Shown here one piece after another: positions 5,975 to 6,097 of a stretch of 64,000 nt of DNA (position 1 is its first letter; every line of letters starts with the position of its first letter). Where the stretch lies: positions 45,907,188 to 45,971,187 of the forward strand of contig NC_068986.1 in assembly GCF_001194135.2 (NCBI RefSeq). Reading direction: 5' to 3'. The stretch is from Octopus bimaculoides. Taxonomy: Eukaryota. The position numbers and the translations under genes were made by a program. Below the pieces are notes generated by a model. The model did not search any database and was not told the DNA's origin. It saw only the letters and a program-made list of their open reading frames with translations.

Positions 5975-6097
5975 CAAGACAATTCTTTTTGTCCATAGTT
6001 TGAATGAAGCCGGTTTTGCAGACACAGATGCCTAGTACGCATCGACTATTTGGTACATCACAATCACTTTCACTGGGACACAAGTCATCGATTCTGC
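5975..6097 (-). CDS. AGRN: Agrin exon: EB/EGF-like six-cysteine module
   Basis: tttatctttgcag acceptor, gtacca donor, phase 1-1, 123 nt; (G)RIDDLCPSESDCDVPNSRCVLGICVCKTGFIQTMDKKNCL. In frame with both neighbouring exons and absent from the supplied ORF track. Confidence 0.85.

Follow-up and report, generated by a model that had tools for sequence, protein, structure and literature searches.

A 123-nt exon on the minus strand of the window (the whole 64-kb stretch of DNA that we analyzed) encodes a six-Cys module of the EB/EGF-like type within an agrin gene. Its similarity to the modules of other agrins is far above chance and, at the level of sequence, it was confirmed as a real coding exon of agrin. 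Protostome agrins have one EB-type module, placed after the last follistatin domain and its 'TTRH' linker and before the first EGF/LamG unit, and the exon is very probably its orthologue. As sequence comparison indicates, this EB module is ancestral to protostomes and was already on record, and is not cephalopod-specific. For annotation, this means that a short exon missed by ORF-based tracks is confirmed and that the exact junctions of the central agrin gene are fixed.

The agrin gene and its short exon

The DNA of the window is eukaryotic and low in GC, and it contains microsatellites and N gaps. Along its minus strand we found the domain order of agrin, that is, tandem follistatin/Kazal domains, two laminin-EGF domains, one more Kazal domain and an EGF domain, collinear with Aplysia agrin (Table 1). 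By this predicted architecture the gene is agrin, and the two laminin-EGF exons are the ones that identify it. The exon of follistatin/Kazal domain 9 (FS9) is 49% identical to Aplysia agrin. No match to LamG was obtained within the 64-kb window, where the gene runs off the low-coordinate end after the first EGF domain (EGF1).

Table 1. Exons and splice sites of the agrin gene in the window, in the order of transcription
Feature	Coordinates	Strand	Details
Follistatin/Kazal exon series	47.3 kb to 27.6 kb	(-)	
Lustrin_cystein-like exon	25148-25294	(-)	EEPCDGNMPLVNPLTGQEYYCYDDKNICPAGSYCHKRATFAKCCRE; Pfam 20 bits, below the cut-off of 27
Four-Cys 'GCC' motif exon	19659-19751	(-)	CKYHTFGCCEDNVTLAKAPNFAGCP; without Pfam family
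Two laminin-EGF exons	15317-15156 and 13747-13607	(-)	Pfam EGF_laminin 76 bits; tblastn vs Aplysia
FS9 exon	12339..12560	(-)	Pfam Kazal_2 43.9 bits; acceptor coordinate inferred from sequence
Upstream Ser/Thr-rich linker exon	9677..9820	(-)	...TSPTPTTRSRKTTRHINHV...ERPPEVV; donor TTG|gtaagt, phase 1; acceptor 9820 or 9817
Acceptor of the EB exon	6098..6110	(-)	tttatctttgcag|; polypyrimidine tract and AG (ttgcag|GC)
EB-type (EGF-superfamily) module exon	5975..6097	(-)	123 nt, phase 1-1; encodes (G)RIDDLCPSESDCDVPNSRCVLGICVCKTGFIQTMDKKNCL(E)
Weak donor of the EB exon	5969..5974	(-)	TTG|gtacca; lowest score of the gene's 14 donors
Downstream exon, linker and EGF1	816..965	(-)	Linker VVSVPPPSPTSNTT; Pfam EGF 30.4 bits

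On the minus strand the EB exon reads ...tttatctttgcag|GCAGAATCGATGAC...AAGAATTGTCTTG|gtaccattt. Two of its bases complete a split codon at the 5′ end and one base opens another at the 3′ end, and the peptide between them (RIDDLCPSESDCDVPNSRCVLGICVCKTGFIQTMDKKNCL) has six Cys. This reading bore out the first-pass annotation, which had placed a 123-nt phase 1-1 exon here and had called it invisible in the ORF track. Indeed, the stop-to-stop frame around the exon is only 53 aa long and has no ATG, which explains why the track does not include it. The neighboring junctions proposed at 9677 and 965 were likewise recovered (upstream GTT G|gtaagt, downstream ttgcag|AGGTTG): the upstream linker exon ends in ...CCAGAAGTCGTTG|gtaagt, and the EGF1 exon begins as ttattgcag|AGGTTGTATCT. 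The module would accordingly be spliced as a phase 1-1 exon from 9677 to 6097 and then from 5975 to 965. With the exon included, the protein would read ...PPEVV-G-RIDDLC...KKNCL-E-VVSVPPP, and with the exon skipped, VV-E-VVS. The acceptor of the EB exon is ordinary; it has 11 pyrimidines at −20 to −3, the same number as the EGF1 exon acceptor.

Three other features of the gene region deserve mention. The Lustrin-like and GCC exons were placed between Kazal 8 and LamEGF1, and both are kept in Aplysia, in cockroach and bee-like loci and in sea urchin agrin; in vertebrate-type agrin, the GCC motif stands right before SEA. At 9986-10096 on the minus strand, in the interval from Kazal9 to the S/T exon, where sea urchin agrin carries a second GCC motif, a GCC-like open frame (CQTSIFGCCSVEGSNDNSLIGIC) was considered as another 'GCC' module exon and rejected, given E-values of 0.02-0.7 and the lack of a usable in-frame GT donor; it may be a decayed exon or a product of chance. 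Lastly, two overlapping ORFs at 4344-5434 on the plus strand code for a PIF1-like helicase (Pfam PIF1, 135 bits). They sit in the EB-EGF1 intron, on the strand opposite to the gene, and coincide with a local rise in GC; they are probably a frameshifted, Helitron-type transposon remnant.

Relatives and domain type of the module

When agrin-type modules from other organisms were compared by tblastn with the whole window, they matched only at 5973-6107 on the minus strand, with E-values of 6.4e-11 (P0030), 7.5e-10 (P0046) and 7.1e-11 (the module of contig L006); the next best match had an E-value of at least 0.03. The spliced LamEGF-to-EGF1 protein, used as the query of a word-index search, retrieved 'agrin, partial [Aplysia californica]' (P0002, NCBI/UniRef), which is 47% identical to the window gene over 287 aa that run across FS9, the SRKTTRHI linker, the module (NIDELCLKDQDCCASFSHCHNGLCNCFDGYIPSLDNSEC) and the EGF1 linker. 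The two are collinear through Kazal, Lustrin-like, GCC, two LamEGF, FS9, the SRKTTRHI linker, the EB-like module and the EGF1 linker. Moreover, the Aplysia protein reads C-F-E-V at the counterpart of the C-L-E-V predicted for the window, an agreement that supports precisely these two splice sites, with 5975 as the (weak) donor and 965 as the acceptor. The Aplysia module (residues 430-475 of P0002) has eight Cys, with an extra pair (EKC... and DCC), whereas the window module and all arthropod-like copies have six, a difference that, from the alignment, suggests the joint gain or loss of the two Cys of one disulphide. A literature search on mollusc or cephalopod agrin returned nothing useful.

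The exon was also found at the same place in two bee-like contigs (L002 and L007), which carry Kazal, Lustrin-like, GCC with LamEGF1, LamEGF2, Kazal9, a 'SKSTRHL' exon, the EB exon and EGF1-LamG1, and whose ORFs share 58-77% identity with the agrin model of a cockroach. Compared by eye, a stretch of L002 is nearly the same as the Apis mellifera agrin that PMC2874008 prints. In both contigs the EB exon has a phase-1 acceptor and a donor right after the first base of the codon that follows C-F (TTCG|gtaaaa and TTTG|gtaaaa), and the intron positions and phases around it are the same as in the window. The insect modules share ~35-50% identity and the six-Cys spacing with the window module, SEA being absent, and their exon differs from that of the window in a longer N-terminal lead-in, 'YRPTPATIRVVTALLGD'.

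A further agrin-like locus, probably lophotrochozoan, lies at 6075-8883 and 10052-10156 of L006 (ENA ERZ25069866 ctg4428); its LamEGF1 and EGF1 are 66% and 54% identical to those of the window. Between LamEGF2 and EGF1 it has ~17 near-identical tandem EB-type modules with a period of ~175 bp, and no Kazal9 was detected in it. This array could be a recent module amplification or an assembly artefact.

Against Pfam EB (PF01683), the isolated exon peptide scored 25.4 bits, marginally above the gathering cut-off of 24.3, and this HMMER-type check sustained the earlier description of a six-Cys EB/EGF-like module. The score fell to 21.7 bits in a 139-aa context, and the match covered only positions 19-50 of the 52 in the profile. 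Other agrin-type modules (P0030, P0040, P0046 and P0042) scored 25.3-29.6 bits against the same profile. The Aplysia module alone reached 23.1 bits and, being just under the cut-off, it has no domain label in the precomputed annotation. Solitary agrin modules match positions 16-50 of the profile and tandem EB proteins match from 7-12 to 50-52; the first positions of the profile may belong to the preceding repeat. The Pfam description of EB has eight conserved Cys over the full 52-position profile; the window module has six, and so it falls outside an eight-Cys definition of EB.

The six Cys of the window module are arranged as C-x5-C-x6-C-x4-C-x-C-x12-C in a domain of ~40 residues. This spacing is identical in all ten agrin-type modules that we aligned, in which one Ser is invariant along with the six Cys, and it also occurs in repeat units of P0016, P0020, P0058 and others. 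A phmmer search with the 40-aa exon peptide among 1.84 billion (1.84e9) representative proteins gave 46 matches at E ≤ 1e-3. EB was the top family in 10/10 of those scanned against Pfam, with 67-172 bits in the multi-repeat ones. The matches were of two classes, secreted proteins with many tandem EB modules and single-module ORFs, the latter of the form ...YRPTPATIRVVTALLGDLC..D.DC.IPNS.C..G.C.C..GYAET.DRQEC[LF]G; one single-module match (P0030) bears the JGI name 'agrin'. A profile search with alignment A1 returned only unnamed short genomic ORFs. The best relatives in the full library thus belong to the EB family PF01683, whose members in nematodes, arthropods and molluscs are secreted proteins built of tandem repeats (e.g., P0013, P0016, P0020 and P0022). 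Three of these (P0013, P0016 and P0022) have EB scores of 80-172 bits, and some units of the tandem proteins share the spacing of the window module. In contrast to them, the window agrin has a single embedded module and no array, and no further EB module copies were found elsewhere in the 64-kb window.

The AF2 model, built with 21 sequences, had a mean pLDDT of 90.6 and showed a central beta-hairpin at residues 17-20 and 23-26. The product would therefore be expected, on this model, to be a module of ~40 residues with the fold of a small, disulphide-stabilised EGF-type beta-hairpin. The top Foldseek matches in the PDB were mostly EGF-like domains (Pfs25/Pvs25, LRP6, factor Xa/IXa, C1s and fibrillin), all of them with E > 1 and TM ≤ 0.55, and a PDB sequence search with the module found nothing significant. 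The authors of a 2026 paper on the secretome of C. elegans (PMC13174244), which does not deal with agrin architecture, explicitly chose not to distinguish EB, WR1, Lustrin-type and EGF domains, as tools and predicted structures overlap. Because these types are not reliably separable, 'EB/EGF-like' is the right level at which to name the module.

Inclusion of the exon in the transcript

We expect the EB exon to be normally included in mRNA, as its long conservation suggests. The module would then lie in the hinge between the matrix-binding N-terminal (Kazal/LamEGF) and the receptor-binding C-terminal (EGF/LamG) halves of agrin, where its likeliest role may be that of a rigid spacer or an interaction module. 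Conservation that predates the split of molluscs, arthropods and nematodes argues for selection on the fold of the module. Our literature search found no paper on the function of the agrin EB-type module.

The main alternative to constitutive inclusion comes from the donor. With a rough consensus PWM it scored −3.8 bits, and the other donors of the gene scored from −0.8 to +7.1 (14 donors in the window). By the same rough PWM, gtacca stands at the 66th percentile among all GT dinucleotides on the strand. The first-pass annotation was thus right in calling the donor weak, and also in stating that skipping keeps the frame; the junction would read VV-E-VV. A regulated cassette, in which the weak donor would tie inclusion to tissue-specific splicing factors and yield +EB and −EB isoforms (VV-G-RIDD...CL-E-VV vs VV-E-VV), nevertheless seems to us rather unlikely. 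It draws on a donor that ranks last of 14 in the gene and near the background of all GT, on a length of 123 nt and a phase (1-1) that preserve the frame upon skipping, on the EB-exon donors of the bee-like loci, which likewise have no G at +5, and on a cockroach model (P0008, Diploptera punctata) in which LamEGF2 is joined directly to EGF1, without the exons for Kazal9 (FS9), the 'STRH' linker and the EB module.

However, the module exons that adjoin the EB exon are, where checked, of phase 1-1 too. Since the neighbors share it, this symmetry is no evidence for a cassette, and frame preservation is unspecific. The bee-like EB donors score low as well (−1.5 and −2.3), yet the Apis and Tribolium models include the exon. 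It is also present in the Aplysia model and in the RT-PCR-assembled cDNA of C. elegans, for which alternative splicing was not found (Hrus et al., 2007, PMC1939731; PMC2874008). In our protein searches, no spliced product of a close relative turned up. A module with invariant Cys has been kept since before molluscs, insects and nematodes diverged, and P0008, the one hint of skipping, is a partial 'hypothetical protein' that represents either a mispredicted model or a genuine short isoform. The more specific proposal that in this species the poor donor gtacca turned an ancestrally constitutive EB exon into a regulated cassette is quite improbable. If regulated inclusion did occur, tissues, for example nervous system and muscle, would differ in whether their agrin has the hinge module.

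That the exon is a chance open frame or a decayed pseudo-exon that merely resembles a Cys-rich module is extremely improbable, for although it is short (123 nt), without ATG, with a weak donor and a marginal Pfam score, three independent orthologous modules gave unique tblastn matches at E ~1e-10, the six Cys and their spacing are all intact, the residues at the splice junctions agree with the Aplysia protein and the intron positions agree with the bee-like loci.

Prior record and origin of the module

Returning to the reading of the exon as a conserved protostome module, we found the module already recorded in a published domain survey. Banyai, Sonderegger and Patthy (PLoS One 2010; PMC2874008) list in their Table S1 a Pfam EB domain directly after the last FS domain in three invertebrate agrins, namely C. 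elegans AGR-1 (870-914, E 6.9e-4), Apis mellifera agrin (1072-1112, E 4.9e-4) and Tribolium castaneum agrin (1117-1157, E 2.6e-5). They occupy the same slot as the module of the window, in the order last FS, EB and EGF1/LamG1, and their scores are similarly marginal. In the 'consensus-verified' architecture of that work, EB was dropped in the insects and relabelled EGF in C. elegans (PMC2874008). The same authors state that the agrins of C. elegans, Apis and Tribolium 'lack SEA domain', and their finds of SEA were confined to Ciona and vertebrates; in sea urchin agrin, EB and SEA are both absent from this place, which is taken by an S/T stretch and a second GCC motif (PMC2874008). Likewise, worm agrin was described as being without the S/T and SEA regions (Hrus et al., 2007, PMC1939731). 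In our own Pfam scans, SEA had no match on the S/T-EB-EGF1 peptide of the window nor on Aplysia P0002.

These records decide how the position of the module is to be read. The first-pass annotation had correctly located it in the stretch where chordate agrin has S/T-SEA-S/T, between FS9 with its linker and EGF1. It had also presented the module as hidden and lineage-specific, which did not hold: the module is in the public Aplysia californica agrin and is entered as EB in Table S1 of PMC2874008, and it recurs in the arthropod-like loci with the same intron positions and phases and in the C. elegans, Apis and Tribolium agrins. The novelty of the module is thereby largely refuted, given that Table S1 and Aplysia already have it in other agrins. 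The S/T-SEA-S/T region of chordates fills the same protein interval (FS9 to EGF1) as the EB module of the window, but the two are not homologous; chordate agrin has a four-Cys 'GCC' motif and SEA in place of the EB-type module.

A lineage-specific innovation, in which a new EB/EGF-like module would have been put in the place of SEA in the lineage of the window, which the first-pass annotation took for a group with elaborate nervous systems, to give novel agrin isoforms, has next to no likelihood. It could appeal to the S/T-SEA-S/T region that vertebrate agrin has here (PMC1939731) and to our first protein search, a word-index search with S/T, EB and EGF1, which gave no relative covering the module and only P0001, an EGF1 fragment of a related species that is 84% identical to the EGF1 exon of the window (its contig, L001, of 1 kb, ends short of the EB exon). 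Against it stand the presence of the same module at the same place in Aplysia and the arthropod-like loci, its record in the agrins of C. elegans, Apis and Tribolium (PMC2874008), and the restriction of SEA to Ciona and vertebrates, which makes it the derived state (PMC2874008). SEA in the FS9-EGF1 interval would then be a chordate acquisition, so that nothing would have been replaced in the lineage of the window. Molluscs join nematodes and insects as holders of an EB-type module between FS9 and EGF1, and the shared module and intron positions support an EB-type module in the protostome ancestor and SEA as a chordate addition.

Finally, the linker that precedes the module carries a short motif. 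The 8-mer SRKTTRHI, at 9747-9794 on the minus strand of the window, is identical in Aplysia agrin; at the corresponding place after FS9, insects have KSTRHL, and a fragment of vertebrate-type agrin (P0005) has TTPRHI. The motif 'TT(P/R)RH(I/L)' after FS9 is thus common to chordate agrin (P0005, TTPRHI) and the window (KTTRHI), and, on these few sequences, this short motif appears to be conserved across bilaterians.
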